From: Setoptus koraiensis
Lineage: Eukaryota; Animalia; Arthropoda
Assembly: GCA_048013815.1 (NCBI GenBank)
Contig: CM106586.1
Location: 8,246,001-8,310,000 of the forward strand
DNA length: 64,000 nt
Direction of reading: 5' to 3'
Part shown: positions 2,505-55,659 of the stretch, piece after piece
How positions within the stretch are numbered: position 1 is the stretch's first letter
Layout: the number at the start of each line of letters is the position of its first letter
Translations under genes and position numbers: made by a program
The notes under the pieces: generated by a model
Told to the model about the DNA's origin: nothing
Database searches by the model: none
Seen by the model: the letters and a program-made list of their open reading frames with translations, nothing else

Positions 2505-3630
2505 TCAACTCGAGATCTTGAGCCCAAAATGCAATATCTCCCTGCACTAACAGGTCAGGTGATTGAATCTAGCCCATATATTCTAATATTTTTATATTTT
2601 ACATAGAACACATACAGTATAGTGTGTTGTTGTATGATAAGTAGCAAAAATAGCCAATGATTACAAAAATAAGAGCAGCAAAATTGATAAAAAATATAAA
2701 CTCATAGTTTGGATACACTTGACAGCATATTTGTGAACAATTTGCTCAATCTGAATGCTACATCTCTATCACCACTCAGCTTGACACGATCGGCATCGAC
2801 GGCCTCTTTCAAGTCAAGTTTTCGGTACATTAGTCTTACTAGATCGTCGTCCTCTAAGTAAAATTCGCAATCCGAGGCCGAGTCAGATTGGCCGGCTCCA
2901 CGACAGACTGTAGGCCGTTTCTCTTTGAGGTTGACAGTGTAAACGGCCACTTCTCGTTGATTTTTCAATATGTGCATTCTGAATATATGTTTCAGATCTT
3001 GAATCAACTGTGGTGCTCTGGCCAATCGCGAGATCATCTCTATTATCATAGCGTCACACCTGAGTCCTTTCAGAGCCCCATTTTCAAGAATATCCGAAGC
3101 CGTATCTAACTCTGGAGCTCTTCCTTGAGATCGAAGTTGATCCCGCATGGTACTTAGTTTGTGCAACAACGAAACATCGCCGTCAAGGCTGACCTTGCCC
3201 ATAATGAAAGCCCGAGCCGGGCTCAATTTACCCATAACCAACGATGCAAAATCCTCATCGTCCACTGTGACAGTACAATCGGGCTTGACATTGTTCTTTG
3301 GTTCGGACCTATAGACGGCCAACTCGTTTTTGCTGTCCGTAGTCCATTTTGCCACTATTTTGCCTCTTCTAGTGATATTAAACTGGAATGTTGCCTTCAG
3401 CTTCTCAGCTAACTCGGGTTCTCTAGCCATACGGTCTGAGATTATCTTGAACAGTATGTCACTCTTTAGACCTGATGTAGGTATTGAGTCCAACAATACC
3501 CGGTCATCATCTACCGCGCTAGCCAGTTGATTTGGTTGTAATTGTCGTAACGTTCGTAACCGCAAACTAAAATGTTCTGATAATGAACTCGACTGAAGAG
3601 CCTGGCCCATGGAGGCTAAGGTGGACCAGA
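2505..3630. repeat. Tandem segmental duplication, copy 2 (paralogous to about 3828-5006)
   Basis: Coding and 3'-flanking sequence align at an offset of about 1325 bp, e.g. aaaatgcaatatctc..gtcaggtgattgaatct (2526-2570) vs aaaatgcaacatctc..gtcaggtgattaaatct (3849-3893). Similarity fades near 2505/3828 and 3630/5006. Confidence 0.9.
2702..3610 (-). CDS. Stand-alone tandem SCP2-SCP2 sterol-carrier-like protein (302 aa) with PTS1, a partial duplicate of the neighbouring HSD17B4-like gene
   Basis: Intact ORF collinear with the C-terminal half of 4027-5820 (FQFNIT...PDCTVTVDDEDF..L..GKL.P..AF.MGK; second SCP2 DCEFYLEDDDLVRLMYRKLDL). Ends in -SKL. The start Met aligns with an internal Met of the parent (MDQAI vs MGQAL). 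Confidence 0.8.
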   Translation of the reverse strand: MGQALQSSSLSEHFSLRLRTLRQLQPNQLASAVDDDRVLLDSIPTSGLKSDILFKIISDRMAREPELAEKLKATFQFNITRRGKIVAKWTTDSKNELAVYRSEPKNNVKPDCTVTVDDEDFASLVMGKLSPARAFIMGKVSLDGDVSLLHKLSTMRDQLRSQGRAPELDTASDILENGALKGLRCDAMIIEMISRLARAPQLIQDLKHIFRMHILKNQREVAVYTVNLKEKRPTVCRGAGQSDSASDCEFYLEDDDLVRLMYRKLDLKEAVDADRVKLSGDRDVAFRLSKLFTNMLSSVSKL

Positions 3631-3827: not shown

Positions 3828-5006
3828 TCAACTTGAATTTTTCGGTCTAAAATGCAACATCTCCTCATACTAATAAGTCAGGTGATTAAATCTCGGCTCC
3901 ATATCATTATATTTTTATATTTTAGTGTGTTTTGCCGTATGACAATTAGTAGCAAAAAAAAAAATAGTCCACTTTGACCCCAAATGATGACAAAAATAAG
4001 AGTAGCAGTAATTATAAAAAATAAACTTATAGTTTGGATACACTTGACTGCGTAGTTGTGAACAATTTGCTCAATCTGAATGCTACATCTCTATTACCAC
4101 CCAGCTTGACACGATTGGCATCGACGGCGTCCTTCAAGTCAAGTTTTCGGTACATTAGTCTTACTAGATCGTCGTCCTCTAAGTAAAATTCGCAATCTGA
4201 GGCCGAGTCAGACTGACCAGCTCCACGATAGAAAGTTGGCTGTTCCTCTTTGAGGTTAACAGTGTAAACGGCCACTTCTTGTTGATCTTTCAATATGTGC
4301 ATTCTGAATATATATTTCAGATCTTGAATCAATTGTGGTACTCTGGCCATACGCAAGAACATTTCTATTATCATAGCGTCACATCGGAATCCTTGCAAGA
4401 TCTTGTAGTTGAGAACAGCCGAGGCCAAAAGATCCAATTCGGGAGCTTTTCCTTGCAATTGAAGCTGAACCCACATGGTGTTTAGTTTTTGCAACAGCAA
4501 AACATTACCCTTGATATTCAGCTTGCCCATCATAAAAGCCCGTTGTGGGTTTAATTTACCCACCATCAATGATACGAAATCCTCATCGTCTACTGTGACA
4601 GTACAATCGGGCTTGACATTGTTCTTTGGTTCGGATCTATAGACGGACACATCATTTTTACTATCTGTTGTCCATGTTGCCTCTAGTTTGCCACTTCTCG
4701 TGATATTAAATTGAAATATTGCCTTAAGTTGTTCAGCTAACTCCGGCTCGTTAGCCATACGATCTGATATAATCTTGAATAATATGTCACACTTTAGACC
4801 TGATGTAGGTATAGAATCCAACAATGCCTTGTCTTCATCTCCCACGCTGGCTAGATGCATTGTAGCAGCTTGACTACTGGCATGTTGTTGATTTGGCTGT
4901 GATTGTTGTTGTTCAACATGTTGCAGTGATCCCAACAACAAACTGAAATGTTCCGATATCGAACCTGGATGAATAGCCTGATCCATGGATGTTATGGCTG
5001 ACCAGT
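3828..5006. repeat. Tandem segmental duplication, copy 1 (3' half and 3' flank of the HSD17B4-like gene)
   Basis: By-eye alignment to 2505-3630, including a 65-nt identical tract (4133-4197 = 2808-2872). Confidence 0.9.
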
Positions 5007-5820
5007 CTCGCTTGATGGCCTCAGGTGTCATCTCGTCGCTTGAGTAAGCCTTGCCTTGTGACCTGTGCAATTTGTATCTGCCAACCCAACCGCCAGCAGC
5101 CTCAAATATTCCACCTGTTTCTGGACAGGACTCATGGGTGAGCCAGGCCACAATTGGGGCAACAAACTCTGGCTGTAATCTCTTGAACAAATGCTCAGGT
5201 ATAACATCCTCGGTGAGTCGTGAAGCGGCCACTGGAACAATAACATTTGATTGGATATTGTATTTGCTGCCCTCAACTGCAAGAGTATTGCTAAGTCCGA
5301 CTAGACCCATTTTGGCTGCCGAATAATTAGTCTGGCCGAAATTACCGTATAGTCCGGCCGAAGAGGCTGTCATTATAATGCGTCCATATTTCTGATCGCG
5401 CATGTAGGGCCAAGCGGCTTTAGTAACAAGAAAAGAGCCCTTCAGGTGCACTTGCTGAATGAGGTCCCAATCTTGTTCCGTCATCTTGAGCAATGATTTA
5501 TCCCTAAGTATGCCGGCATTGTTGATGATAATATCTACACGTCCAAAATTGTCAATGGCTGTCTTAACTATGGCCTCTCCCTGTTCCACCGAGTTATAAT
5601 TTGGGACGGCTTTACCGCCAGCGGCTCGAATTTCATTGACAACTTTGTCCGCTGCTGCTGTGACCTGTTGTCCACTTGGCTCGCCCGATCTAGTGCCACC
5701 TAGATCATTTACAACCACCGATGCACCTCTAGAGGCCAATAATAATGCGTATTGCCGTCCCAAGCCGCCACCAGCACCAGTGACTATGGCCACACGATTG
5801 TCGAAACGTAATTGATCCAT
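4027..5820 (-). CDS. HSD17B4: Peroxisomal MFE-2/HSD17B4-type (3R)-hydroxyacyl-CoA dehydrogenase fused to two SCP2 domains (597 aa, intronless, PTS1)
   Basis: MDQLRFDNRVAIVTGAGGGLGR (SDR GxxxGxG), NNAGILRD, YSAAKMGL (YxxxK) and GLYGNFGQTNY match MFE-2 dehydrogenase domains. Two SCP2-like domains and a C-terminal SKL follow. The likely start is ATG 5820; the 56-aa extension in the ORF track is AT-rich flank. Confidence 0.92.
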   Translation of the reverse strand: MDQLRFDNRVAIVTGAGGGLGRQYALLLASRGASVVVNDLGGTRSGEPSGQQVTAAADKVVNEIRAAGGKAVPNYNSVEQGEAIVKTAIDNFGRVDIIINNAGILRDKSLLKMTEQDWDLIQQVHLKGSFLVTKAAWPYMRDQKYGRIIMTASSAGLYGNFGQTNYSAAKMGLVGLSNTLAVEGSKYNIQSNVIVPVAASRLTEDVIPEHLFKRLQPEFVAPIVAWLTHESCPETGGIFEAAGGWVGRYKLHRSQGKAYSSDEMTPEAIKRDWSAITSMDQAIHPGSISEHFSLLLGSLQHVEQQQSQPNQQHASSQAATMHLASVGDEDKALLDSIPTSGLKCDILFKIISDRMANEPELAEQLKAIFQFNITRSGKLEATWTTDSKNDVSVYRSEPKNNVKPDCTVTVDDEDFVSLMVGKLNPQRAFMMGKLNIKGNVLLLQKLNTMWVQLQLQGKAPELDLLASAVLNYKILQGFRCDAMIIEMFLRMARVPQLIQDLKYIFRMHILKDQQEVAVYTVNLKEEQPTFYRGAGQSDSASDCEFYLEDDDLVRLMYRKLDLKDAVDANRVKLGGNRDVAFRLSKLFTTTQSSVSKL

Positions 5821-8809
5821 GAATGGTGTTGTTGTCGTTAGCAATCTATAATATGTTGATAATTCTGAAGTTACTTGCTGCCGAAACAATTTATCGTTGA
5901 CGGCTCTCTGGTTTGGTTGAGTGTGTTTGAAAAATATATTTGAAAATGTATTATTATAAGTTATATAAATGTTGTTGATGAAAATCACAACTAATTGGTT
6001 TTAAGGCGAAGTCGCTTTCTCTTGCGTTGCTCAGACAATGATGTTATAATAATTGTGAGACTCTGACTAACTATAATGGCGATGAATTAACATTCATCAG
6101 ATAATGAACATCAGCAGGTTGGCGAGCAACAACAAACAAGATAATGCGTATACACTAGACTGGTGGCGGTGGCTCTTTCTAGTCGTGCGACAAGTAGTAA
6201 CAAGTGGTATAGAAAAAGAAGAAGAAAAAAGAGAGAGAGAGAGAGAGAAAAGAAGTTGTTGTTGCCGTTGTAGTTGGTATTGCATTAGTGTACATACACA
6301 TAATATATAAACACACCCGCCACAGCTAGATTGTCTCTGTCGCTACATTATTCGAAGTTTCGCCAAAGAAGTTACCTTCTCTTTCTTCCTCTCTACACCT
6401 ACTACGACAACTACCACTACCACCGTAGTAACACTGTAATACCACCACTCATTGCTTCTTCTACTACTTCGTATCTCGCCTCAAGCATTCGGATTTGTGT
6501 AGCACCTTCGCTGGCTTGGTGGCTTGCCAGACAACTTTTCAACAAAATCTGCTAAACTTGTCGTCCACACTCGTGCCAAACATTCAAATCTTGTGCCTAA
6601 GTGTGAGTGCTGATTATTCTCTAAATTGATTCTAGTCAGTGGTAATAATAATCTCCGTATTATTATTATCATTGTCCGAAAAAAATATTGAGGCCTCATT
6701 GACTAGCTTATTATTATCATCGTCATCATTAGATAATAGTGATCGAGCTAAATTTGCCTCTAGTGCCCTCGTATCGGTTTGGATGGTTGGCTCATGTGAT
6801 GTGATGTTATGTTGGTTGTTTCTGGCAGTGTGCTCATGACAAGTCGCTTATAGCAATGACTGACTTATGTACCGTAAACTGTACCCATGACTAGCATGAC
6901 TAGTTTGTTTGGAGATGGATGAAAATACACACATCTATATATTTGTCGTCTTTATTCATCATTGACGCCGTCTTCTTCAATGTTGAGCGCCAGCAGTTCG
7001 GCGACTCAACTAGTTATTACTACAAGTTTGCCTGTAAACAACCGCAGCCCTCAATCGCAATAACGATGATGCAATGGTTGTTTACGCGGCTTGCCAGAAT
7101 GCTTATATGCTAAAACATCCCAAGCTAACAAACTCAACAGAAAGAAAGTAAAATGAGTCTAATGTCTTATTCTCTCGAACACAAACTCAATTTTAAATGA
7201 GGTCTAAAATTTCAACTCTGTATGTGATAAACAACCTGGATTTACCAAGTGATGCCCTAGGACTTAAAGATTTGTCATTCTATATCCTTGTAGTCTATCT
7301 ACCCGTTCTTTTGTCCACATGCACAATCATTTGTCTGCCAATTACAAGTGAGCTCGATAGGCCCTGATGATTAGCCCTTCAAAATCTGCGAATAAGGGTC
7401 AATGGAATCAACAACTTTTTCGCTCTTAGTCTTCAGCATAGTGATGCAGTTTGAAGTTCATGACAACTTGTTTACATGATGACGATAATTCAAATGTCGC
7501 ATGCTCGAAAGCCCAGGACAGAGTTTAGGAGGCCCTTTTTCGATTGAATAAGTCACAAGATAGATTCAAGCTACTTTTCATTCTCACTCTGTAAATAGAT
7601 TTACTTCGCTGTTGAAAACTTACCTGAGCATAATGCTCCAATTTTTTCCCAATCGCAGCCTTTATGAACACAGAAAATATGGAGAACATCTAAAATGAAA
7701 CTATGTCGGAATGATAGTGCAAGACTGGTGTACGTACAATTACAGTTTCGAAGGTGTTTGAATCTAGTGAACGATCTATTGTGGAATGGCAACTAAAAAG
7801 TTGGAAGTTTTTCCCAACTCTTTACTCTGACAAGAGTTTTTTCTCAATACATATAATAATGAATCCAACTATCCTAGCTTGCAACTCAAGTTGACAATCG
7901 GTTACGAGTCCCCATCTAGTATATCCTCATACGTGTTGCAATATTAAGATTAGTTGATTGATGATAGCCCAATGATTCAATGTAAGTGCATGCAATAACA
8001 ATAACAATAATAATAAAAATATACAGCGATAATATAGTATAATATAGTGAGTTGAGTCGACTTCAAGGATAAGCAATTAGTAGCAACTCCAGAGCTAGAC
8101 CATGTTTTACTCTGTGCCAACCCGGTCGTCTTCTGAATAAATAAAGCTCTCTAAAGTTACGAGTTGTAACATATGATTGCGGCGAGCAACAAGTGCCAGC
8201 CAAACTAGTGAGACACAGATTGAAGAAGAGATATTGGCTCGTTCAATCCCGACACCTTCGAAAATTTTTGTTGTTGATTGCAATTCTTGCAGCAGGTATT
8301 AAACATCCTCACCGACGATTATCCATCGTGTAGCCGGATAATCTATTGGTTAGGTATAAACATCGGAGGTTGATCTAGAGAATTTTTGTTTTATTCATAA
8401 ACAAATGGAAATCTCTCGCAAAAAGGACTGTTGAATCGAGCGCCAACAATATGTTGCGCTTGCGCAGTAAACTCCCACACACACTTCCTATGATGGTGAC
8501 ACACGCACCAAGCTTTGGCAGTGCTTCACTGGTTGTGCGTGCGTCCCGTTTCGTTTGCCGTAGTGCAGCCAGAGTGCATGGCATAGACTACTCACATGCT
8601 GTATTGGCAGATAATTGGACAGACCTCGTATCAATAGGAGAACATTTAAATTCTTACCGATAAATTAGAATATATTTAAGGATTTATCAGGCTGCAAGGA
8701 CTACATCGGTCGCCGGACACTAAAACATCGGCAGTATTTATCAAATTCAACCACGCCAGATCGTAGGTATTGTCGCACTAACACATATTACAGCAAACAA
8801 AAAGTCTAA

Positions 8810-34777: not shown

Positions 34778-34790
34778 ATGCCGCATAAAG
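34778..34790 (+). CDS. Pax6: Pax6 coding exon 1 (MPHK-G)
   Basis: ATG CCG CAT AAA G|gtacgt joins in phase to give MPHKGHSG, a familiar invertebrate Pax6 N-terminus; there is an in-frame stop upstream at 34682. Confidence 0.8.
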
Positions 34791-37700
34791 GTACGTGCGG
34801 CCCGCCGCGATACCCGCCACAATACAATAATAATGTCGCCGCATCTCCGGCCAGCTCTGCAGCGTTGCAGCTAACGATGCAGAATGGTCCCAATCGGCGA
34901 CATTACATAATATGATTAATATTATCGACATTACGTATAATTATAATCAATGCGACAATAATAAACGATCTAACGAATTCTCTCCCCAATGTAATCCGCT
35001 CAATGCTACCCGTCCAATGCTACCCGCTCAATGCAACCCGCTCAACGCAACCCGTCCACCGCGTCTCGCCGCATCCGCACAGGTCACTCGGGTATCAATC
35101 AGCTGGGTGGCACCTACGTCAACGGTCGCCCGCTGCCCGACAGCATCCGGCATGAAATTGTCAAGCTGAACAACAGCGGCGCCCGGCCGTGCGACATATC
35201 GCGTCTGTTGCAGGTGAGTACCCCGCAAGCCCGAGCCTATATCGATACGAGGCGCATCGACAATTGTGAATGGTGCGATACTCGAGCACTAATTAGCTGA
35301 CCATTATGACGCACCTATCGTTGATTAGCGCAACTGCTGTCACACTCATTATTTATTCCATACTAATTGACTGTTTATTTGCATTATTGGTTTGTATTAC
35401 CATTTCATCATTTGCCCGCTGCGTGTCGCCTGTGCGTCAGGTGTCAAACGGATGCGTCAGCAAAATACTGGGCCGATACTATGAGACGGGCTCCATAAAA
35501 CCGCGCGCCATTGGCGGAAGTAAGCCGCGTGTGGCCACTCCCGACGTAGTAAACAAGATATCGCAATTAAAACGCGACAGTCCCTCTATATTTGCCTGGG
35601 AAATCCGCGACAGATTATTGCACGAAAACATTTGTGATAGCGAGAGCGTGCCAAGCGTAAGTAGCCCCATCTATCTTGAATAAATGAATATCTTGCCCGG
35701 CTTGTGTGTATACAATTGAGCCATTTATCATCGTTTACGGTGGCTGGCGAGCGCGACTCGGCTCAGCGATTGCCGGACAGCGGCACAGCGATTGCCGGAC
35801 AGCGGCACAGACAGATATGACGTAACCGCTGCGGCCTATAGGTTGGCGCGAGCAACACAATCATTGCGTCACAATGGTCAGCCTTATCTCTGGCGCATTT
35901 TGGTGCTAGTGAGCACGGACAATGGTGATATATGGGCCATTCTATTATATATGTGCGCCGGTCAGAATATTCATGTTGTTAATTTGCAAGTGTGCATGTG
36001 GTGTGCGAGTTATCGGTATCGCCCGATCTCAGCTCGCAGCGTGTCTACGTGTTGATCAAGATAATCACGTGTCGCGACAACAGCGACGACGACGACAACA
36101 TCATCGAATCAGCAACGAGACGCCGGCGACTTTTGCCAGCGGCCGGGCGCGTTTGTTGTGGCCGGGCCGGGCCGGGCGCAAATGGCCCCAAGTGATGATA
36201 ACAACTCAATCTAACGATCATCAGCGCAAACAAATGATGGTGACACAAAGAGTGCGAAGAATATGCAAAAAATAATAGAATGCTCAGCCAACATACAGAT
36301 ATGCTCGTAGATATTCATAACACCACAGTGGCAGCCGGAGAATGGCAGAGGGCGCTGAGAGTGCGGACAGAACATGCAAAAATAGTTTGTTGCAACAATG
36401 ACTCGGACATGCCATTGTTCGCCGGTTTGTTCAACGGTTTGGCACATTGAACAAACTGGCGAACAAAGAACGACCACGACCAGTAGACGTGCTGACGGGC
36501 CCCATTAGCACTTCGGCCGGCGTCGTGTCAACAGTTGACTTTGGCCGGCGACAATGAATGAAACCGAATGCAAGATTAAATTTACAAACGCCAGAGATAA
36601 GTGACTTTTTGCCCGCTTTGATCCATTAATGATCGCTGGCGTTTGCATTGTTGCTGCCGTGGTCGTTGCTGTTGTTGTTGCTGTTGTTGTTGTCGCTGTC
36701 GTTGCTGTTGTCGTTGTCGCGGTCGGCATTGTTTGCTGACCACGAGCAGCGCCACGAGCGCCGCAAACAGATCACTGGTCGCCCGCAAACGACATCTCGC
36801 CAGCGCTTGTCCGGTGGCAGTTGTTTGGCGCATACTGACACTGTTATAATACCAATAATGACACCAATAACAAACGATCGCTCGGACTGAATGTGTGCGG
36901 CGCGATTCGGCCGCGATTTTGCCCGTCGGGCCGGGCCCGAAATTTGTACCTGCAAGGTCGCGGCCATTGTTGACCGGCGCGGCACCCAAGTGTAATTGGC
37001 GCGGCGATAATTCAGTCGGCCAGTTGAGCCGGCCCGAGTCAGTCCGTCGGTCGGGCGAGGTGAGAACACAGAAACACATTAATCAAGTGATCGGGTGGCT
37101 TTGTTGTTGCGGGCCGCGCGACACGACACCGCGACACGAAAACATGGTGTAAATACACGTGTTTTGGGCCGCAAAACAACTCTTTCGATCTATTGTTTGC
37201 CCGTTTGTTTGCCGGCTCATCGTTGGACGGCCGATTAACCGGCGACAAACGAGCCACCGGACAAACGGCTCAAAACGGCTCAAGACGGCGCAAAACGGCC
37301 AGTCCATTTGCATTTGCGCGCCGGGCCCGAGCGGGCCGCGCAGCGGCCAATGAGCAGCGTGAAATCAACATTGTTTGCGGCCCGTCAGGCGTGCCCCGCT
37401 CGGCTTTGAATAATCAATAATTACACGCTGACCGTCCCGAGCTGGCCGGTGCGGGCGCCCGATAGAGCGGCCGATGGAGCGCCCAATGGGCGGCCAGCCG
37501 AGCGCATCAGAGCGAAACGCATGACTAATTAGTGGCTGTCGAAACGCTTATTGAGTTGTCACAACTGAATTAGCGCCGCCTAACCGCGTCGACACCCGCG
37601 CAAGCCTCGACATGCGAATACCCGAACACCACACTGCGCGAATATCCGAACACCACACTGCGCGAATATCCGAATACCCGACTAACCCGCTCTTTCCGCC

Positions 37701-40700
37701 ATTTTCGTCCCCCGTCTCACCACCAACAACCCGACGCCATCGAACGGCCTGACGCCATCGAACGACCCGACGCCTTCCGGACGACCCGCCAATCAACGCG
37801 AAGGTCTCCTCAATCAACCGCGTGCTCAGACACTTGGCCGCGCAAAAGGACGCCACCGGGTCGGGCGCGGTCTCGGGCGAGCAGGCCATGTACGACACGC
37901 TGCGCATGCTGAACGGGCAGTCGTGGGCCCCCAAGAGCACGCCCTGGTACGCGCACCACCAGGCGGCCAGCCACACGTCGACGGCGGTGAGCGCCGTAGG
38001 CGTGGCCGCCGTGCACCATTATCATGCCGCGGCGGCCATAGCCGCCACCAACGCCGCCACCGGCGGCACGGGACCCGGCGCATTCGTGAACAGCGCGGCC
38101 GGGCATCATCACCATGCGGCGGCGGCGTCGCTAGCCTCGCAAATGGCCGCCTCTCATCACCATCATCATCATCATCATCAGTATCACCAGCACACCACAA
38201 ACATAATAAACGCCACGGCGGCGGCCGCGGCCGCAGCCGCCAACTCACTTTCGCCCATCAGCAACAGCAACAACAACAACAACAACAACAGCGGCAACCA
38301 GGCGGCCCTATCGGGCCACGAAATGTCCGCGGCCGGCGCGGCCAGCACGGGACTGCAAGCGGCCAACAACCAGCAACAAAACAGCGACATTTATGGCAAC
38401 GATCACCAGCAAACAGCGACACCGTCGTCGACCACGGCAACCACAGCCAGCACCACAGGGCAATACAGCAACAGTAACCACCACCAGCAACACCAGCACC
38501 ACCACATGCCCACGAGCGCCACATCGCCGACTAGCGGCCAGCAGCACCAGCAGCAGTTATGCAACGCAAACGGGGGCAGCAGCAGCGTGAGTCCCTGCAC
38601 AACAGGTACAACTGGCACAGTGGACAGTTTGATAGGCAGCGCCGCAGCCAACAACCCGGCAGCCTCTCAGGTGACCGCGGCGGCGGCCGCAGCGCTGGCC
38701 GCTGCAGCCGCCGCGGACAACCCGCACAATCCGTGGTACCACCATTTGCATCATGCGCACGCCGCGGCAGCCGCAGCGCACCACAATCACCAGCTCAATC
38801 AGATTAATCAGCACCACCATCAGCACCACCACAATCTAGATGCGCACCACCAGCACCACCAAGTCAATCAGCACCAGTCTGTGCACCATTTGCACAACCG
38901 GCACCAGCAGCACATGCAGCAGCAGCAGCAGCCTCACCTGAGTCACCTGTCCACGGTGCAGGAGCAGGCCGCGGCCAACGGTCAGCCGCAGCAGCAAAAG
39001 GGCGGCGCCAGCAGGACGGGCTCGGCTAATTGTGATCTAGTTATCGACAACCAGTCCAACGATTGCGACATGAGCAAAGGTAATTATCTGCCCCGTTCAC
39101 CTCTGTTTTGCCTCCGTTCACCTCTGTTTGCCCTCCATTTATCCCTGTTTGCCCTGATTATCTCTGTTTGCCGTGACACTCCGTTTGCGGTGACACCCGT
39201 CGCGCCGGCCGTCGAGCCGGCCGGCAATTCGCTGCGAGCCGGCATTGGTTGCGGGCCGGCAGCCGATTGCGAGTAAGGCCACCGCTCGTAGACAGCCGCT
39301 AATTATGCGCCTGTCACCACTCATTTGCTTATCGCGCCATCATCGTCATTAATTTTTATCCTTGCAACTAATTTTGCCAGCCTACTAATGCCAGCGCAAA
39401 CCGGATAGTTGCGTCGTTAGCCTTGCGTGGGCGCTCGTTGCCAAAAGCGTCACTCAGGTGATTGTGTCGCGCATATTTGCGATGCCTGCGCTACCTGCGA
39501 TGTTCGCGATATTTGCGATATTCGCGATATTCGCGATGTTTGTGATATTAGCGATATTTGCGATATTTGCGATGTTTGTGATATTCGCGGCACTTGCGAT
39601 GCCGATGCCGGCAAGCTGGCGCGACGATGGCGCTGCCGATAAGCGCCCGATATCGCTGAATGAGCGAGTCGATTTGCGTCAATTCGCGTCAGTTTGCTCA
39701 TTTGCTGGCTGTCGGCGATTTCGCCAGATAACGATGCGGCTGATTAAGATGCTAATTGGCAGCTCCGTCGCGATAATTGTTCCTGCGCCTCGCATCGCCA
39801 GCGTGCTTGCGTCGGTTGCGTCGGTCGCGTCGGTCGCGCCGGGTCGTCATGGCGACAAAGTGCCTCGCCGAGCCGCCACAAACAGACTCTCGCCGGCTCG
39901 CCCGGCTCGAGCCGCCGGTAACGGTAGCATCAGATAGTGGCGCACGCCAGATAGCTCCGGCGCTCGAACGGCAGCGTTCGACGGCAGCGTTCGAACTTCG
40001 AAGGCAGCGCTCGAACTTGGAAGGCGACGTTCGACGGCGGCGCTCGACGCATTCTTATCTGGCTCGCCATCGCAACGACAGCTCCCATTTGCAATTAGAC
40101 AGCGGGCTCAATCAGCGCCAATTGCGCCGCATCCAGACTCGGCCAGACCGTCCGGCCGACACACTGGCCGACACACTGGCCAATCACGCGGCCTGAGCAG
40201 TGCGGCAGCGCGCCGCGAGAGGGCCGCCCAATATAGGCTGCCTATTATGTATTATGTACATAATGTGCGGTCGTATTATAGGCCGGCCCGGCCGCGTTGC
40301 CTGGCCAATGTTGGCCCGTGCTGCCACTGTGCCACTGCGGCACATTGGCGCCGGCACAGCACGTTAATTGTGCGCACTGTGTGTCGCGGGCACCATTGGC
40401 GCGCCCCAGCAAAAACAATGCTGCTCAACTCGCACTGATTGCTTGTTTATTTGGCAGCCAGTTTTGATTTAATGCAATTGTCAGCCAGTTAGCCAATGTT
40501 GCCATTGCAGCGCTAATAGAGCCAACACTGAGCGTGGCTTCATTAGCTGCCCGCGACACCGGCTCGGCCCGTTTGGGGCCCGCGGCGTCCGCAGCGGCCC
40601 AAAAGGCGCGCCAGCCGAGCACAGGCTGCACGTGCTGCACGCGCCCGACATGTTGTGCACGAGGCACGACGACGACGGATTTCTAGCGGCGGGCCCCCGA

Positions 40701-43700
40701 ATTTCTGGCGGCGCGCGGCGGTTGCTCGTTGTCATTGCGTCATCACGTCAGCGGCAGCAGCGGCGGTGGCGGCGGCGGGCGCCTCGTCAGTTGTGAGCGA
40801 GTCGCGCTTGTTCCAAATCGATTGATCGTGATATTGTCCGAATAAATCATCGCCGTACGCGCCCGCACGCGGTCGCCATATCCGGCTGTGCCCCTGTCGC
40901 TGTTGTGGATCGTTTTGAAACTGTTCGTCGTTGGCACATGCTCGCCTCGTTGTAACGTATTTCGTGGGCCATTTCAAATTGCATTTGGCGCCCCGTGTTT
41001 CACGCGCGCGCCAAGCCGCCACGTCGCCATGTCACAGCTATTAGTTGGCCAGTTGGCCACTGTGAGCTAGCTAGTGGGGCCCACGAGCCCCACTGGCCCC
41101 CACTGCCCGCGAGCGGCACAGACTGGACGCTGGCTTGTTCCGGTCGCGTGCTGCTCGGCGCACAGCCGCCGGATCGTGTGCACCGGGCGGTGCGACGGCC
41201 CGGCCCGAACTGTGCCGCCGCCGTCGGTTTCATTCGGGGCATCGCGAGACGCGTCAGAGGCACAACGGAGCTCGAGGAGCGCCGGCGTGCTTCTGACGCG
41301 GAGTATCATTTAAACGGCGAATTTTAAATGGTTGGCGCGGTGAGAATGGCCAGCGCCAGAGGTATGCGAACCAGCGCCGAGTAACCCGAGCAGCGAGCGA
41401 GGGTCCGACGAAAAGCGTTTGGTCGGCCGCGCAACCGAGCAGCGAGCCAGCTTTTGCAATTTGGCAATTTCAGTCGTGGCCATAGCCGGCGCTGATGTCT
41501 ATATCAGATTTGGCAATTGTCATTGTGATATGGTCAACCGCTATCGCTGACACTTGTGAGATTGGCAGGCCGATTGGACGGCGAGCGCGATTTCGAGCGC
41601 TCGAGAATTCGAGAATTCGACAGTTCGACGGTTCGACGGTTCGACGGTTCGACGGTTCGAGAGTTCGAGAGTGAGCAGCGCGCAAAACCGGTTTCGGCGC
41701 TCACTCGCTGGCTCACTCGCTGGCAACCTTGCTGCCGGCGAGCCCGCGAACCCGTCTCGCCAGTGGGCCGATAGTTGCGGTTGTGACAGTCACGAGGGCT
41801 GGTAGTTGTGACAGCCAGGCGAGCTGATAGTCGAGATAGCTGATAGTTGCGATAGCTGATAGGCCGTCGCTGACAGGCGAGATTGTCATCAGTATCGGTA
41901 GGTGTGCGCGTTGTCAGCCGCTTCGGCGATATGCTGGCGACAAACAAAGCCAGCATGCCCAGCGATATCCGCAGATATCCGCAGATATCCAGCGATATCC
42001 AGCGATAAGCCGCGAGCCAGCCAATTTGGGCGGCGGCATTCCGACGAGCGGCGCAGATTTCTATCGGCGTCGACAATTCGAAGCGACGCTCGCCTGACAG
42101 CTCAAAGCGACTGACGATTGTCGCCCGGCGCACACGCCAGCAATGCAAACAAATTTGTTTCGCAGCCGCTTAATTATTGTGTCCGCCGCTAACAAATTTT
42201 ACAATTTGTTGTCTTGAGCGCACTACAACTTGTGCCACATAATTAACTCTCGTTCCGGCGCCGGCCGCCAGGGCTACCTGTGTCACAGCCGACACGGGTA
42301 GCCGCCCGTGACACAGGTAGCCGTCAGGTGGCGCCGGGTTTGCGGGACGGCGCTGCTGTCGACGTGTGGCGCTGCTGTCAACGTGCGGCGACGGTAGCTC
42401 AACTTGTCGCCAGTCTCTCTTGTGTGTCTGGCCGTGGCGAACGATTTACAAATGCAAATCTCGTTATCGCACGACGAATCGCATCTGATTCGCGACGGCC
42501 GGCCAGTCGATTCGCGACGGCCGGCCAGTCGATTTGCGAAGGCCGGCCGGCCGGCCGGCCAGCCAGCGTTTGCGCTTCTCAGTTGTGCACAGCTCAATTG
42601 ACGGCCAACTGACAACTGACAACTACCAATTGACAGTTTACAGTTGACAATTGACAATTGAGACCACCGACCGGTGGCACAGGAACGTCAATTGCCTGTC
42701 GAACGGGCGGCCGGGCGACCAGCTGACCGGCCGCGCCGGCCACTGGAACTTGTGAACGGGCCGGCCACACTGACAACTTGTGAGCGCGGGCCGGCCACAC
42801 TGAGCGGGCCGGCAGCGATTGCGAGTGGATGGGCGACGCGGCACGTCGCGTGCCGTCCCACGCCGCGCGAGCACGCAAACGCACACAAATACACAACATA
42901 TAAACATACAAACACGTAACATGTAAACATTCGAGCACGTGTAAACATGCAAATAACAAGTATAAATTTACACGTGACGCGTCGATGCGCCGTGATTGTG
43001 AACATGTGAGTAATTCGAGCCTCTCTCCCACTCTCTGTATTATATCGACTCTCTGTATTATATACGCAACTCTCTGTCTGTTGCGTCATCGATGTAGACG
43101 CCGTTGGCTGCGACAATCAGGACACGGACACTTCCTCTCTGTACGGCGCCAACAACGGCCTGTCGGGCGCGTCCGAGGCCCATCAGCAGCAGCAACAAGC
43201 TTCGGCAACAATTATGATGATGCAACAACAACAACAACAACAGCCGGATAATGGCGACTACGATGTGGAGCCCATGAATGGCAACGGAACGGCAGCCAAA
43301 GCGACGCCAACGGACAACAGCGGCAACAACGGCGGGTCAGCACGCGCCGCTGCAAGCAAACAACAAATGACCAGCAACAATGACGTAACAAACGCCACAG
43401 CAAATCCAGCGACCAATCAGCTGGTTGGTGACGATGATGACGAGTGCGATGAAGATGACGAGTGCGACGATGACGACGACGACGACGGTGATGACGAAGA
43501 GGACGGCGACGATGATGATGTCGACAATGACGACGACGACGATGACGATAATGAGGACGATGACGACGACGACATGGACGACATGGACGACATGGACGAC
43601 GATCTAGATGGCGCTGGCTCGGACGGAAATGGATCGACGTCGGCAGGTAACGTTCGCATATTGAGTAATAACAACGGCACAAGCCAGGCGCAAGGCGGCG

Positions 43701-44728
43701 CCACTAGACATGCCCAATTGCACGGGCTGGATCGAAATCAAGTCAAGTGCGAGCAGCAACAACAACTCAACAACAACAACAACAACAACAACTCAAGTGG
43801 GGGCGATGCCGCCATGATGAAAAGACAATTGGGCGCCAATTATGCAGTCGACAACAACAATGGCAGCAAAAGTGGTAACAGATTGGCGAATCAGGGCGCA
43901 AAGAATGGCGCCACCAGCAAGAGCGAACTGAAGCGACTCAAGTCACTCAAGAAGAAACTACAACGCAATAGAACCTCGTTCACCCCCGAACAAATTGAGG
44001 CGCTCGAAAAAGAATTCGAACAGACGCATTATCCGGATGGGGGCGCCAGAGAGAAGCTGGCGCAAAAGATTGCGCTGCCCGAGCAACGAATACAGGTTTG
44101 GTTTTCGAACCGTCGGGCCAAGTTTAGGCGCGAAGATAAATTGCGCGATCAACGCACTAGACAAACAACGCCATCATCAACAGCGAGCAAACAATCGACA
44201 AAAACTAAATCAACAACATCGTCGTCGTCGTGCGCCTCACTGTCGTCCTCTAATGCAACGACAAACAACAACAACAACAACAACACCGTTAAACAACACC
44301 AAAACAGCAATAATACCGGCGACAAACAGTCGGCCAGCGCATTATTGCAACAACAGCAGCAGCAGCACCAACTTGTCCAGCAGCACCAGGATGGTATGAG
44401 TGGCGCGCGACAGATGGCATCAGTGTCGCCCTCGCGCCAAGACACCCAAGCGGCGGACCCGGCCGCCCCGATGGCGCCCGCCGCACTGACCGCGCCGCGA
44501 GCCACTTCCGTTAACAGCACCGTCACCAGTACCCTGTCTCCGCAGCCCGGCCCAGTTTGTGATGCCGGCTCAACGGCGGCGGCGGCGGCTGCGGCCCAGT
44601 TTGCGGCCCAGCAGCAGCAACAACAGCACCACCAGGTGAGCGACCTGCAACAGCACTACCAGCATCACCAGAACCAGTATCACCAGCAGCAGCACCAGCA
44701 GCAGCAATACGCTCACAGCCAGGCCGAA

Positions 44729-44760
<32 letters not shown>

Positions 44761-46824
44761 CCACCACCAGCAACAACAGCAGCAACAACAGCACCATCAG
44801 CACCAGCATCACCACCAGCAACAACTGCAACAACAACAACAGCACCACCACCACCAGCAACAGCAGCATCACCACCAACAACAACAGCAGCATCAGCAGC
44901 ACCACCAACAACTGCAGTTGCAGCAGCACCACCAGCACCACCAGCAACTGCACCACCAGCAACAACAACAGCAACAACAACAACAACAACAACTGTATCA
45001 AATGTCCACGGGCGACCTGTCGAGCAACCAACAGCAACAGCACAGCACCAGCTCGCCCTCGGTTGACAGCACCGGCGCGCAAATGTCCATGGACAACGTC
45101 ATTGCGCTGACGGCCTCGTCCACGCCCAACTCGTCGTCGCTGATGGACTCGACGGGCTCGCAAATGTCCGCGGCGGCCGCGGCCGCCGCCCTGGCGGCCC
45201 GATCGGCCTTCTCGTCGTCTCTTTACCCGTCCGCAATGGCGTCCGCCGCCGCCGCCAACACGCCCGGCGCCCAATCTGCGGTCGCCCACATGGACGCGGC
45301 CTCGTACAGGTGAGTAGCGAGCCAACTGGCATGGCGTCACCGCCTAACTCGTCACACTCGTCAATCACTGGCGCCCCTCTTGGCAAGCGTACTCAAAAGT
45401 AATTAACACTTATCCGTCTTCTGCCCCAATTATCTTTTATCGCCACTATCAATCTTGTCAACGCGCTTGAAAACGTCGCGAATGTCGCTATGTCACCCTC
45501 GTTCTTTTTGAATATATCGCCAATATATCATATTTATTCCAACTCGACACGTCATCGCCCAACGTAGCTCGTCGCTGTCGGGCTACTCCATGCAGCCGGC
45601 GTCCGCGATGCACCACCACCCCGGGCACGCCCACCATCATCACCATCACCATTTGGGCGCAGCGGCGGCGGCCGCCGGTACGGGCGGTCACCTGACGGGC
45701 AGTCCGACGGTCGTTGGTCACCATCAGAGCGGCGGCCCGTATTCCAGCTATATGCTACCGCCGGCGTCCAGCGCGGCGGCGGCGGCCAAGAGCGGCTACG
45801 ATCACTTGGCGGCCAGCTCGTTGCATTCGTCGGCGTACGCGGCCGCCCGAGCGGTGGCCGCCTGCAATCAAAGTGCCAATAATAGCAACACAACCACCAA
45901 CAACAACTCCGTTGGCCAGCAATCGGTGTCGCCCAATTCAACCGGCCCGGCCTCACACCAACTCTCCACGGCCTCCGTCGGTCACCACCATCCCGCCCAT
46001 CATCAGCATCACGCCCATCACGCCGCGGCTCATCATCATGCCGCTGCGGCGGCGTCGGTCATTCAGACGGCCGCCGTGGCGGCGGCTCATGCCGCAGCGG
46101 CCAGCCAACATCAGCATCACGCCCATCATTTACATCATCCCCATCATCATCATCAGCAGCACCAGCAGCCGCTACCGCACCATCATGCCCACCATCATGC
46201 CCATCATCATGCCCATCATGCCCATCATCATCCGCACCATCAGCAGCAGCAGTTACACGCGGGCGGTTCGGCGGGTGCCGCCGGAACCGGCGGCAGCAGC
46301 AGCAGCGCCACCATAGGGGTAAGTGGCGGCACTTCCGGTCACGAAAGCGCCAATCATCATCATCACAGCATGAGTCATCATCATGCCCATCATCAGCACC
46401 AACAAATGATGGCGGCAGTTGCGGCCGCCACACCCCATCACCATCATCAATTTGGCGGCATGTCTGCCGGCAGTCACGCCCACCAGGTCTCTGGGTCGGG
46501 TTCGGGCCAAACGAGCGGTCAAGCGTCGGGTGAGTGTCTCAAGAGTTGAACCTATATATCGCTCATTATTAGCTTGTGTCTACTAGCTTGCCACGCGAAT
46601 AAGGTTGCACGCGTTGGCGCGTGCCAGTATTCACGGCAAAAGATGAGCACAACGACGAGGTGACATTTGCGATCATTATTGTGTTGATGCGACTAATTTA
46701 TTTGGGTCAACTGGCGGCAAGCGACTAACTAAATTTATCTCTCTCTCTCTCTCTCTCTTTGTTAATGTTTCCTTGATTAAATCTGTTTACAGGCTACCTG
46801 CCGAGTATCTGCCTGAATACCTGA
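34778..46824 (+). CDS. Pax6: Pax6 (twin of eyeless-type), 7 coding exons, about 1613 aa: join(34778..34790,35083..35213,35441..35656,37804..39079,43098..45309,45568..46529,46793..46824)
   Basis: Paired domain, the [11 protein letters not shown] linker motif and an S50 paired-class homeodomain. All six introns are GT-AG and phase-consistent (1,0,0,1,2,1), summing to 4842 nt. [20 protein letters not shown] and MYD.LRMLNGQ fit the toy/vertebrate type better than eyeless. Confidence 0.93.
35083..35213 (+). CDS. Pax6: Pax6 exon 2 (paired domain, PAI subdomain)
   Basis: cag|GT CAC TCG...TTG CAG|gtgagt encodes [43 protein letters not shown]. Confidence 0.96.
35441..35656 (+). CDS. Pax6: Pax6 exon 3 (paired domain)
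   Basis: cag|GTG TCA AAC GGA...CCA AGC|gtaagt encodes [37 protein letters not shown]...[12 protein letters not shown]...VPS. Confidence 0.97.
37804..39079 (+). CDS. Pax6: Pax6 exon 4 (end of paired domain, linker motif, low-complexity linker)
   Basis: aag|GTC TCC TCA ATC AAC CGC = [12 protein letters not shown], then [13 protein letters not shown]...PWY; donor AAA G|gtaatt (3' boundary less certain). Confidence 0.88.
43098..45309 (+). CDS. Pax6: Pax6 exon 5 (acidic tract, homeodomain at 43958-44137, polyQ/H)
   Basis: tgtag|AC GCC GTT is phase-compatible with exon 4; [20 protein letters not shown]...[19 protein letters not shown]; donor TAC AG|gtgagt. Confidence 0.9.
45568..46529 (+). CDS. 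Pax6: Pax6 exon 6 (His/Ala/Ser-rich tail)
   Basis: cgtag|C TCG TCG is in frame with the 45590 ORF; donor TCG G|gtgagt. Confidence 0.8.
46793..46824 (+). CDS. Pax6: Pax6 putative last coding exon ([10 protein letters not shown])
   Basis: Strong polypyrimidine tract and tttacag| acceptor, phase 1. There is no conserved protein motif to confirm it. Confidence 0.55.
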
Positions 46825-51180: not shown

Positions 51181-52066
51181 ATGCACACCAAATCGCGGAG
51201 GCTTGTCAGCCTCTTTGTGACGCTCCTCTGCTGGGGCTCGGCGTTGGGCCTGGCGCGAGCCGCACTGCATCGCCAGCCACCATTATCACCGCTATTATCG
51301 CCATTATCGTCAGCACCACCAACACCAAAAACAACAGCAACAGCAACAATTATAATAACAACAACAACAACGCCCGCGTTAGCCCAACTATTACTATCGT
51401 CATCATCGCCTCGTGACAATAGTCAATCATATCATCAGGAACTAGGTCATGTAAACAATTACGCTAGCGGCGTTGATGGCGTCGCAGCGCAACAGCCACA
51501 CAATAGCCGGCACGCCATCGAAGGAGCGGATCAACAACAACAAGATAATTATCAGCAACAGACGACCGAGAATAGAGAGATGCATTCGTCAATCAAACTA
51601 ATCAGTGATACAGTTAATAATGCTCGTCATTACAATCACAATTATAACACAGTTGTCGATAACAACAACAACAACAACAACAATGCCGCAATAAGAAAGA
51701 GGTAAGCAGCAAACTGTTGGTGTGACTCCGACATGATACTCATGATGGCCACACATGCGCCTACGTACGTGACGCTCATCAGCGACTCATCTGTCTCGAC
51801 GCAACCTCTAATCTGGCTCATCTGTTTCCTCTCTCTGTGGTCGCTATTGGTTGTTGCATTGTAAATTGCATGCACCAATTGCACACACACACACACACAC
51901 ACGCTCAATTAATTGAATTAGGTCCAGGAGAAGCGGAATATCAGATCAGCGATTGGCCGAAATTCAGACCTTGTTGGCACTGAGAAAGTTGAGCGAACGA
52001 GCGAAAAATTCTCTCGCGACAGCGGCACTCAATTCGCCGCTCGCTTTGCTGGACGAAAAATTGTAA
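51181..52066 (+). CDS. Secreted neuropeptide precursor, PTH-like/PXXXamide (iPTH) family candidate: join(51181..51701,51922..52066), 221 aa
   Basis: Signal-peptide-like start MHTKSRRLVSLFVTLLCWGSALGLARA. AAG AG|gtaagc donor and aattag|G acceptor join in phase to give IRKRSRR|SGISDQRLAEIQTLLALRKLSE...SPLALLDEKL*, a multibasic site followed by a core resembling the SDQRLAELETLLAL motif. Confidence 0.72.
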
Positions 52067-52101
52067 GTACCGGCAGTAGCAAACACACTTTTGAGACACA
52101 C

Positions 52102-52182
52102 TTTGAACACTTCGAACGCTTCGAACACTTCGAACACTTCGAACACTTCGAACACTCCGAACACTTCCAACACTTGGAACGC
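52102..52182. repeat. 9-bp tandem repeat, about 9 copies (ttcgaacac)
   Basis: Seen directly, with degenerate edges. Confidence 0.88.
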
Positions 52183-53790
52183 TCGAAGCCCGACCGAATG
52201 ACCTTACCTTGGAGCTAGGCCAAACAAGTTAGAAGTGCGCTCTCGTATAATGAATTATTTATTAATTATGTAACTCTGTCTCTGTCTATTCGCTGCTGTG
52301 TATGCATGTTCCGGGGAATGCCCAACATCACAATCAATGTTCAACATCGCCATACAGGCAGTCAGGTTAACACACCGGCGGCCAGCTAGCTATCTAGACT
52401 ACACACACACACACACACTCACACACTGACAAAAATGCATAGACATAGTCGGAACATAGTGGACGAACAAATGAACAAATGCACTTTTCCATGGGTTCAA
52501 GCATGCCGATATTTTTACACTACAACCACCACCACAACTACCGCCGCCACCACCACCACCACCACAACACAACTACCACCAATACACACCACAACCAACC
52601 ATTGGCTGCGTGATGCAACACATAAACTCAATATCACATGTATATTGTATATGTATATCTGGATATCTGGATATCTAGCCATGCAGCAGCCACTTGGAGA
52701 GGCTGACATGTCGAGAACTATTATTATTATTATTAATATTATTACTTATTACTTATTAGTATAGAGACTATCATAGAGAGACTGTGGACATTCACATTTT
52801 CTGGAAAAGGGCTTCGGCTGGCATAGTCGCCTAGACGCAATGGCACAAGCTAGACAAGTGACGATCCTATTCACTTGTAAACTTTCGAGAGCGCCACGGA
52901 AAGTGATCCATTGTGTCAACTAATAATGGAAGTGCTGCTATGAGCGATGGTGCGACCAACCAGTTGATGAGAACTCTCGTCGTCTCTATCATCTCAAGTT
53001 CCTACTAATGCACACGACTCGGCTGCCTGGCTTTGCTTTGAAAACAGACGACACACACAAACAAACAAACAGATAAATAACATACATATAAACAGATAAA
53101 CAATTTCAAAGGGCAAGCAGGCAGGTAGACAGACAGACAAATCAAGCGACTATATCGACACAAACACACACACACACTCACTACTAGCTATATTTAGTAT
53201 ATTCAATATATTATTCAATATATTATATTGTACCGACACCTGTGAGAGAGTGTGTGTGTGTGTGTGTGCGTATGCGTGAGGCCCGTGGCACATTGCATAA
53301 TAATTGTTGTTGTTCGACAAGCAAACAACAAGATAACAAGAGGCAGAGAAGAGGCGAATAAGAAGACGATCGAAATTCGAATAAGGAATTTTCGAGATTT
53401 TGAAATTTTGTTTTATTTTTTTCGCGGCAAACAACTGTACAGGTGTAACAACAACAGTACAGTTGTGCGCTGCGATTGTGCGCCGGGCCAGGGTGCATGC
53501 GCATGCGTCGCATATTTTCATCGTGCGGTTCGTATGTTTTCGATGATGATCTCCTAAAAACGCAATATACGCACTTTATGTAGCAACAATATGCAGTGTG
53601 CAATACAACAATACAATTTATTTTCGCATATACAATCGCAATTACGCAATTATTATCATTATTAATTATTATTACCTATTATTATTGTATAACAAATAAA
53701 TTATTACATTATCACATTATTACCGTAATCGGCTGGCTGTACAATTAAATAGACTATCGCTATCACTGCGCATCCGTAGACCGAGCAACA

Positions 53791-55659
53791 ATGACCGAGT
53801 GGGACGAAATCAAGAAGCTAGCAGCCGACTTCCAGCGTTTGCAGGAAAGCGACACATTGCAGAAAATATCCGAGAGGAACTGTATTGATATCATCAAGAA
53901 ACTAAGCGAGCTAAATCTCATCGATTTAATACACACCACAGATGGTAGGGAATTCATCACGCCGGCCCATCTAACCAAAGAAATTCAGGATGAGATTCAT
54001 GTCAATGGGGGCAAGGTGCACCTGCACATTCTAGCCGCCTCCCTCAACGTAGACTATCATCACATCGAGAATAAATCCAAGGATCTCGTCAAGGAATATC
54101 CAGACGAATATTTTCTAGTGCTGGGCCAAATCATACACGCCTCATACAAGGACAGTCTGGCCAAGGAAATCAATGAACAATTGCAATGCAACGGACAAAT
54201 CACAATTGCCGAACTGTCCAAAACAATAGATCTGCCAGCGGATTTCATCTACGACATTGTTACCGAACGTCTTGGAACTATTGTGGAGGGCATTGCGGCC
54301 TCGCACGACCCGAGGACATTTTACACTGCCGACTTTATTGCGCGCTACAGATCGAAAATATCCGGCGCTCTTTCCGGCGTCACATGTCCAACTACCATTG
54401 CCACCTTGCTCAAACGCTTCCCCGACATACCTGAACGAATTTTGTTGCCTGTAACAGAGGCCTTAATTAAGGAGGGACGAGTCGATGCAACCATCGAGAG
54501 TAGAATATTCATACCGGCAATATATGCTCGCGAACAAAACATATGGATAGACAATTTCTACAAGCAAAACTCCTACATTGAATATGACGTTCTATCCAGG
54601 ATGAACATCAAACAACCTAAGGCCTTTCTGAGAAAAAAATTCAACAATTGCGTTTTTTTGAAAACCTGCTGTGTTAGCCAGTTAATATCGGCTCAAGTGG
54701 AATCTGTTATTGAAGAATGCATCGCTTCAAACAGCTGGATGGACCTTACATCAGTTCTGCCGTCAATTTTGGATCAGGACGATGTAGAACTGCTGGTTCA
54801 AGATGCCTTCAAATCAAACAAAAGCTTCGAAACTTCGTGCATTATAATAAACAAAGTCAACGTATGTGGTAAAGGATTTTTAGAAACATGCAAAAATTCA
54901 TTCGACACTGTGATGAAATCAAGGGCAAACGACCAGCTAAAGGAAGGCCGTCTCATGAACTATTTCGTCGGTGTTGATGAAACTGTCCGAAACGTGACGG
55001 AAGCAGAAAAAGATGATCTGAAGGAGGAAGCCACTAAAGACGAACCGACGGAAACGAAACCAATAGAAACAAAACCAACAGAAACAAAACCAACAGAAAC
55101 AAAATCACCGGAAACAAAACCAGTGGAAATAAAACCAACTGAAACAAAACCAACTGATGAAGCACCTCAAGGTAAAGGTTCCAAGGCTAGTAAAGCTGCA
55201 AACAGACGAAGTGGAGGAGGTGGAGGTGGTACCCAAGGGCGCGAAGTCAAAACAAAGAACGTCAAAAAGAAGTACATACCTGGAAACAAGCATAATCAGT
55301 CAAAGAACGACGACGATTCGGACAACGAGCCCACCAATGTAAAATCCAGCAATAAAGGTCGCAGAGGTAGAACCTCGAAGAGATCAATATCCCCTGATCA
55401 AGGCCAAACGAAGCAAAGCGAGCATTTGAAAGAACCCTTGACATTTATGACTGTTGATGAGATAAGTGAGCAATTGTCAACGAGTATTGAGGACGGACGC
55501 AATTGTGATCCTGATTTCCTGGAATCAATTGCCAGCATAATTGAACAGGATTTGAATAGCACCTATTTGAGTATAGCACACGATATATTTAATGAATCCT
55601 TAAAAGAACATGATGATCAACTAGACAATGGTTCCGACGAGATTGAAGTTATTTCGTAA
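53791..55659 (+). CDS. UFL1: E3 UFM1-protein ligase 1 (622 aa, intronless, short C-terminus)
   Basis: MTEWDEIKKLAADFQRLQ...KISERNCIDII...DLIHTTDGREFITP..L.KEI.DE matches the UFL1 N-terminus; the GGG..GREVKTKNVKKKY basic segment is present. Confidence 0.95.
   Translation: MTEWDEIKKLAADFQRLQESDTLQKISERNCIDIIKKLSELNLIDLIHTTDGREFITPAHLTKEIQDEIHVNGGKVHLHILAASLNVDYHHIENKSKDLVKEYPDEYFLVLGQIIHASYKDSLAKEINEQLQCNGQITIAELSKTIDLPADFIYDIVTERLGTIVEGIAASHDPRTFYTADFIARYRSKISGALSGVTCPTTIATLLKRFPDIPERILLPVTEALIKEGRVDATIESRIFIPAIYAREQNIWIDNFYKQNSYIEYDVLSRMNIKQPKAFLRKKFNNCVFLKTCCVSQLISAQVESVIEECIASNSWMDLTSVLPSILDQDDVELLVQDAFKSNKSFETSCIIINKVNVCGKGFLETCKNSFDTVMKSRANDQLKEGRLMNYFVGVDETVRNVTEAEKDDLKEEATKDEPTETKPIETKPTETKPTETKSPETKPVEIKPTETKPTDEAPQGKGSKASKAANRRSGGGGGGTQGREVKTKNVKKKYIPGNKHNQSKNDDDSDNEPTNVKSSNKGRRGRTSKRSISPDQGQTKQSEHLKEPLTFMTVDEISEQLSTSIEDGRNCDPDFLESIASIIEQDLNSTYLSIAHDIFNESLKEHDDQLDNGSDEIEVIS
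55051..55155 (+). repeat. 15-bp coding minisatellite, 7 copies (ETKPT-like pentapeptide), inside UFL1
   Basis: gaaacaaaaccaaca-type units at 55051, 55066, 55081, 55096, 55111, 55126 and 55141. Confidence 0.92.

Follow-up and report, generated by a model that had tools for sequence, protein, structure and literature searches.

The question raised by this locus is whether an open reading frame (ORF) that offers a signal peptide followed by low-complexity sequence is the first exon of a hormone gene whose active part emerges only on splicing and, if it is, to which family the hormone belongs and how its C-terminus is formed. As read from its sequence, the window, i.e. the whole 64,000-nucleotide stretch of Setoptus koraiensis DNA analysed here, contains an unannotated gene, in two exons, whose product is the secreted precursor of an invertebrate parathyroid-hormone-like (iPTH) peptide of the spider and tick type. 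That this is a functional prepropeptide gene of the iPTH (formerly PXXXamide) family, in the chelicerate form starting SGISDQRLAE, is the best reading and is held with high confidence. Since the peptide appears only after splicing, views based on ORFs miss the gene. It is a new and divergent member of a hormone family that earlier work had described and tested in ticks and beetles, and not a new kind of hormone.

Family identity of the peptide exon

Straight after its basic site the window peptide starts RRSGISDQRLAEIQTLLAL, and at the same place Table S1 of PMC7224569 has RRSGISDQRLAEIETLLAM in spiders, RRSGISDQRLAELETLLAL in a scorpion and KRSGISDQRLAEIEALIAM in a tardigrade, the SGISDQ start being the chelicerate and tardigrade form from which the insect form differs (PMC7224569). 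The conserved N-terminal core of the family (S-D, then Q-R-L-A-E-[LI]-x-x-L-L-A-L) is present, and the opening RRSGISDQRLAEI.TLLAL is near-identical to that of published chelicerate iPTH/PXXXamide precursors. The preliminary description had named this motif; it is real, with Table S1 of PMC7224569 and the phmmer, tblastn and profile searches in agreement.

A phmmer search with the 47-aa exon product against 1.84 billion (1.84e9) representative proteins gave a single match (E 5.7e-4 for the whole library), the iPTH-like precursor of the sea spider Pycnogonum litorale, a protein of 152 aa with two tandem SG.SDQ..A..ET.L.L copies, each with a ..DPS..[KR]-type end. The window exon and this precursor share 16/26 identities in BLASTP. 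When seven iPTH-type proteins were compared with the whole window by tblastn, matches with E values of 1e-5 to 5e-9 were confined to 51920-52039 and everything else had E of at least 0.007; such values being unique to this segment, chance is excluded. No second or alternative peptide exon, of the sort present in molluscs and termites, was found in the window by tblastn. The profile comparison with iPTH/PXXXamide precursors that had been proposed as a check, made with the Pycnogonum protein and the window exon, matched a spider precursor (P0122) and five unannotated iPTH-type ORFs, namely a canonical peptide exon (P0123) and the ORFs P0124-P0127. Pfam has no model for the iPTH family: the window exon and P0122 match none of its families, the peptide exon does not match the Parathyroid (PTH/PTHrP) profile, and one sub-threshold match, of P0001, is unrelated. 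Rfam gave 0 matches on the window.

From the Asp of SGISDQ onwards, AlphaFold2 (alignment A3) predicts one long helix, spanning residues 8-46 of the 47-aa query, with a pLDDT of 95 over residues 11-20 and of 56-62 in the C-terminal half. The predicted helix fits a ligand of a class-B GPCR, and the first 26 or so residues of the 44-aa peptide are the conserved helix-forming core of the family.

Two exons and the predicted precursor

Table 1. Coordinates of the predicted gene and of features bearing on its 3′ end
Feature	Position	Strand	Description and basis
Exon 1, coding part	51181..51701	+	start codon, signal peptide, propeptide and terminal R-K-(R); ORF list, translation
Predicted signal peptide	51181-51261	+	27 aa; ORF translation
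Intron 1	51702..51921	+	220 nt, GTAAGC...TTAG, phase 2; donor and acceptor read directly
Exon 2 (peptide exon)	51922..52066	+	RKR completed, SRR 51923-51931, 44-aa peptide 51932-52063, TAA 52064-66; phmmer, BLASTP, tblastn, alignment
Perfect GTAAGT over last Leu codon and stop	52063..52068	+	either still the active donor for the conserved phase-2 intron preceding the amidation Gly, or a relic of that donor
Weak candidate exon 3	52458..52613	+	would read F-G-R-T...; AG at 52458-59, single Arg, poor pyrimidine tract; a bare possibility

In the ORF list the first exon is part of a 174-aa ORF (51181-51705) with its ATG at 51181 and its own TAA at 51703-05, and an in-frame stop 6 nt before the ATG means that this ORF has no upstream extension unless one is spliced to it. 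The call of the signal peptide was made by inspection and hydropathy: residues 1-27 comprise a basic n-region (K4, R6, R7), a 17-residue hydrophobic core with an 11-residue Kyte-Doolittle mean of up to 2.4, and an A-R-A motif before the predicted cut. The propeptide that follows is 144 aa of low complexity, rich in N, S, A, T and Q, and past the signal peptide the exon-1 portion of the precursor has a single basic pair, in the RKR at the exon junction. For the exon-1 protein there were 0 homologues in 5.8e9 proteins and no Pfam family, and its Atlas look-alikes were just weak, unrelated low-complexity secreted proteins. Propeptides cannot be aligned even between the window and the relative L008, as is usual for spacers.

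Exon 1 ends at 51701 in the donor AG/GTAAGC (here and below the slash marks the exon boundary), and the stop of the exon-1 ORF sits within that donor. The frame of the peptide exon opens at 51917, after a TGA at 51914-16, and this TGA closes the frame upstream, which makes the AG at 51920-21 the natural acceptor; with another in-frame AG, at 51926-27, the site would read RKRR in place of RKRSRR. The join of 51701 to 51922 is in frame, in phase 2, and gives RKRSRR, then the 44-aa peptide and its TAA, the di- or multibasic site immediately N-terminal of the peptide being built by the exon junction itself. The preliminary description had held that the ORF track offers only a signal-peptide, low-complexity ORF, that the peptide core requires precisely this splice, and that the join creates a convertase-type RKRSRR site followed by a 44-aa peptide; the predicted joined translation bears out each of these points. 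By homology, the signal peptide would be removed, furin or a prohormone convertase would then cut past RKRSRR to free the C-terminal 44-mer, and the 44-mer, like its tick and beetle counterparts, would serve as the helical ligand for a class B1 GPCR of the PTH-receptor-like kind.

The locus is present in three public runs, two of which are one data set. Their contigs are continuous through the intron and the intergenic DNA, contain no 51701/51922 joint and have the character of genomic DNA; because they cover the intron and intergenic sequence, the runs count as DNA and are neutral on splicing. A further run search confined to RNA libraries yielded 0 runs. A separate observation is that word depth in runs X1 and X2 is 200-300 over 52583-53897, compared with 92 for UFL1 and 10-30 for the iPTH gene. 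If these runs are amplified DNA the peak is mere unevenness, and if they are RNA it is an abundant unannotated transcript.

Relatives and the C-terminus of the peptide

The relatives recovered from public contigs allow the exon structure to be compared. In the canonical relatives L006 and L007 the peptide exon starts just past an AG, two codons ahead of KR-SGISDQ, and ends ...CAA AT/GTAAGT, where a naive ORF reads ...DPEQM and stops; the next exon, T GGG AGG CGA AGA..., continues as I-G-R-R-R-R, an amidation and cleavage signal. The window has AAA TT/GTAAGT at the matching position and phase. In L008 (P0124) a long same-strand ORF with a signal-peptide-like segment ends TTA AG/GTAAGT in phase 2, and an acceptor, GTTAG/T, 476 nt further on restores the frame four codons ahead of KR-SGISDQ; this intron agrees in phase and position with intron 1 of the window, and exon 1 ends AG/GTAAG in both. 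From L006-L008 was derived, in this analysis, the structural signature used here for the family, i.e. an acceptor just ahead of the basic site and a phase-2 donor that interrupts the codon preceding the Gly, and the window gene has both. Upstream of the peptide exon in the P0125 contig is a 333-aa ORF, and in that contig and in L008 alike the long same-strand ORF lies 300-480 nt upstream of the peptide exon. The subgroup has conserved its predicted long propeptide exon, which is no artefact. A propeptide of about 150 aa and a divergent C-terminal half, both put forward in the preliminary description, are borne out and recur in the unannotated relatives.

Within P0127 (L009, 55-549), the propeptide is continuous with the KR-SGISDQ peptide, with no intron. 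It also includes a Cys motif resembling LDL-receptor class A (Pfam PF00057), at an E of 0.0015 that does not reach the cut-off.

At the level of the DNA the core has been held constant. SGISDQRLAEIQ is identical in the window and L009, yet all 12 of its codons differ, every difference being synonymous, and over the five DNAs available the core is saturated at synonymous sites (pS about 0.8-1.6), with pN of 0-0.16. This codon comparison shows strong purifying selection on the predicted peptide core throughout the group.

The C-terminus is less straightforward. An amidation signal, G-[KR]-[KR], is called strictly conserved in the family (PMC7224569). In the window the peptide runs straight into TAA, and no G-[KR]-[KR] occurs in any frame over 52067-53790, i.e. 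up to the UFL1 start at 53791. A strict search downstream of the peptide exon for AG/N-G-[KR][KR] found none. The relaxed form found four AG/N-GGN sites, about the number expected by chance, of which two (52458 and 53339) have a single Arg after them and both of these are poor acceptors. The candidate at 53339 was rejected: a close relative, L001, which has 94% Idh identity to the window and shares its UFL1-TRAPP-Idh order, has non-triplet indels there, and the segment is not conserved as coding. The L001 contig itself ends 505 nt upstream of UFL1. The mildly conserved Pro at -4 from the C-terminus, from which PXXXamide takes its name, is absent, the end being L-L-D-E-K-L with the nearest Pro at -9.

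Most likely, though with no more than moderate confidence, the TAA within what was once a splice donor is the real stop, the predicted peptide having a free-acid end and the ancestral third exon (G-R-R and tail) having been lost. What argues for this is the lack of G-[KR]-[KR] both in P0124-P0127, where an ordinary stop is reached 42-50 aa beyond the KR site, and in the window as far as the next gene. The TAA would have arisen as a stop when the GTAAGT donor ceased to be spliced, and the loss of the third exon would be shared with the related unannotated genes P0124-P0127. A gene of the same family with three exons, in which the GTAAGT at 52063-68 is an active donor and a downstream exon supplies the Gly and basic residues so that the peptide is amidated like canonical iPTH, is possible though rather doubtful. 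The donor is perfect and stands at the exact position and phase of the L006/L007 intron, whose next exon begins with G-R-R-R-R codons, and the end of the window peptide looks canonical, its L-D-x-x-L aligning to D-P-x-x-I/L; against this are the true stops of P0124-P0127 and, in the window, the barren stretch up to 53791 with only the chance-like pair of single-Arg sites just described.

The same loss of the amidation signal, together with the divergent C-terminal half and a low-complexity propeptide lacking homologues, could be taken as signs of decay, the peptide exon being the nonfunctional relic of an iPTH gene that had lost its third exon and amidation. This is improbable, given an intact start codon and signal peptide, two intact splice signals in compatible frames, an intact basic cluster at the junction and a core conserved by selection across the group; retention of the truncated design in four relatives argues for a working variant. 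Least probable is that a real peptide exon is joined to a different, unseen 5′ exon and that the 174-aa ORF arose by chance in repeat-rich DNA. Long chance ORFs are indeed frequent (the window has 99 ORFs of at least 110 aa), and the 174-aa ORF is of low complexity and without homologues, but it opens with a canonical signal peptide and ends in RKR at a good, phase-matched donor, and an equivalent upstream ORF exists in L008 and the P0125 contig, in L008 with the phase-2 AG/GTAAGT end. The preferred reading remains that of a two-exon, working precursor gene.

Genomic setting and the wider family

A tree of Idh proteins places the window, with good support, in a clade of 20 rows made up of it and 19 Logan/ENA sequences. 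Three contigs of this clade besides the syntenic L001 (L002-L004) are extremely gene-dense and intron-poor, with very long intronless ORFs. Taken with the SGISDQ-type peptide, this tentatively suggests an acariform mite, perhaps one of the eriophyoids, a group reported to have small numbers of tiny chromosomes. The Idh, RpL13, UFL1 and TRAPP subunit proteins of the window have no exact match in the protein collection. The same tree has the UniRef 'Aceria tosichella' Idh grouped with a thrips (100/99 support) and a 'Rhagoletis zephyria' Idh-like protein inside the astigmatid mites, and both entries are likely contaminants in public records.

Several other features of the window were noted. The neighbouring gene, at 34778-46824 (+), encodes a PAX domain in ORF 35306-35683 (E 9e-40) and a homeodomain in ORF 43214-45313 (E 3e-22), the two being set apart by long His/Gln/Ala-rich ORFs, consistent with a giant Pax6. 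Beginning 35 nt past the peptide exon, at 52099-52170, is a tandem 9-bp repeat, CACTTCGAA and variants, in about 7 copies. Upstream of UFL1, two blocks (53495-53507 and 53543-53560) are conserved with the 94%-Idh relative (L001, about 250-420) amid diverged DNA; one of them is the palindromic GCATGCGCATGCG, which we take to resemble an NRF-1/Ewg-type site, and the block is probably a promoter element of UFL1. On the minus strand a 653-aa MFE-2-like ORF (4027-5988) consists of a dehydrogenase and two SCP2-like repeats, and a 302-aa ORF (2702-3610, also minus) is a high-identity copy of its C-terminal part, with both repeats, the product of a recent partial duplication in tandem.

Among experimentally characterized members of the family, the closest counterpart is the 41-aa amidated iPTH of the ticks Ixodes ricinus and I. 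scapularis, which activates PTHR1 and PTHR2 with an EC50 of about 50-60 nM (bioRxiv 10.64898/2026.06.22.733765; PMC7224569 Table S1). The tick and window precursors have in common a signal peptide, a basic site right before SGISDQRLAE (the same ten N-terminal residues), a helical core and a similar peptide length (41 and 44 aa), but the tick precursor has only 131 aa, with a short spacer and the amidated end ...VDPNKI-G-K-R, whereas the window precursor carries about 150 aa of spacer, lacks a Gly-basic signal and differs in its C-terminal half. Spider and scorpion precursors (Stegodyphus, Latrodectus and Centruroides in Table S1; P0122 from Larinioides) are identical to the window at 17-18 of 19 positions over RRSGISDQRLAEI/L.TLLAL/M; in them, unlike the window, the peptide nearly abuts the signal peptide and ...[VI]DP..[IL]GKRKR is kept. 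The insect form is represented by that of Tribolium castaneum, which activates its receptors with EC50 values of 63 and 413 nM (PMC7224569): the S-D motif and leucine-rich helix are shared, while the N-terminus is (K/R)R-V-SDQ without SGI, the peptide is amidated and the precursors are short. P0124-P0127 (Logan/ENA contigs L008 and L009) agree with the window outside the family core as well, in AEIQ...AL(K/R)K..ERA, and likewise have a long propeptide ORF upstream, no amidation signal and, in L008, the phase-2 intron ahead of the cleavage site; they differ in MIRAL for TLLAL and in the loss of the L-D-x-x-L end and of the GTAAGT at the stop. With vertebrate PTH, PTHrP and TIP39 the likeness is one of presumed action, as helical ligands of an orthologous class B1 GPCR, and there is no detectable sequence similarity to the window peptide and no Pfam match, identity between iPTH and vertebrate PTH-type peptides being reported as <12% (PMC7224569).

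The presence of iPTH and its receptors in chelicerates was already known and tested, and the window gene overturns nothing in this regard. The iPTH system is reported lost in Diptera and Lepidoptera (PMC7224569); the present genome is not insect-like and iPTH is expected in a mite, so the reported absence is untouched. What the gene adds is an unannotated hormone gene in a genome without protein annotation in the collections searched and, with its four unannotated relatives, an iPTH subgroup defined by long propeptides and the lack of an amidation signal, a natural test of which half of a class-B GPCR ligand cannot be dispensed with. A tentative reading, somewhat doubtful as it stands, is that an intron-poor, small-genome mite lineage has remodelled its PTH-like hormone, with loss of the third exon, the amide and the conserved C-terminal half that binds the receptor ectodomain, with the N-terminal activating core kept invariant and with growth of the propeptide to 150-300 aa. 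The window gene, retaining as it does the donor and the L-D-x-x-L end, would then be a transitional form. If remodelling of this kind did occur, either ligand-receptor recognition in the lineage has been rewired or the receptor has changed.
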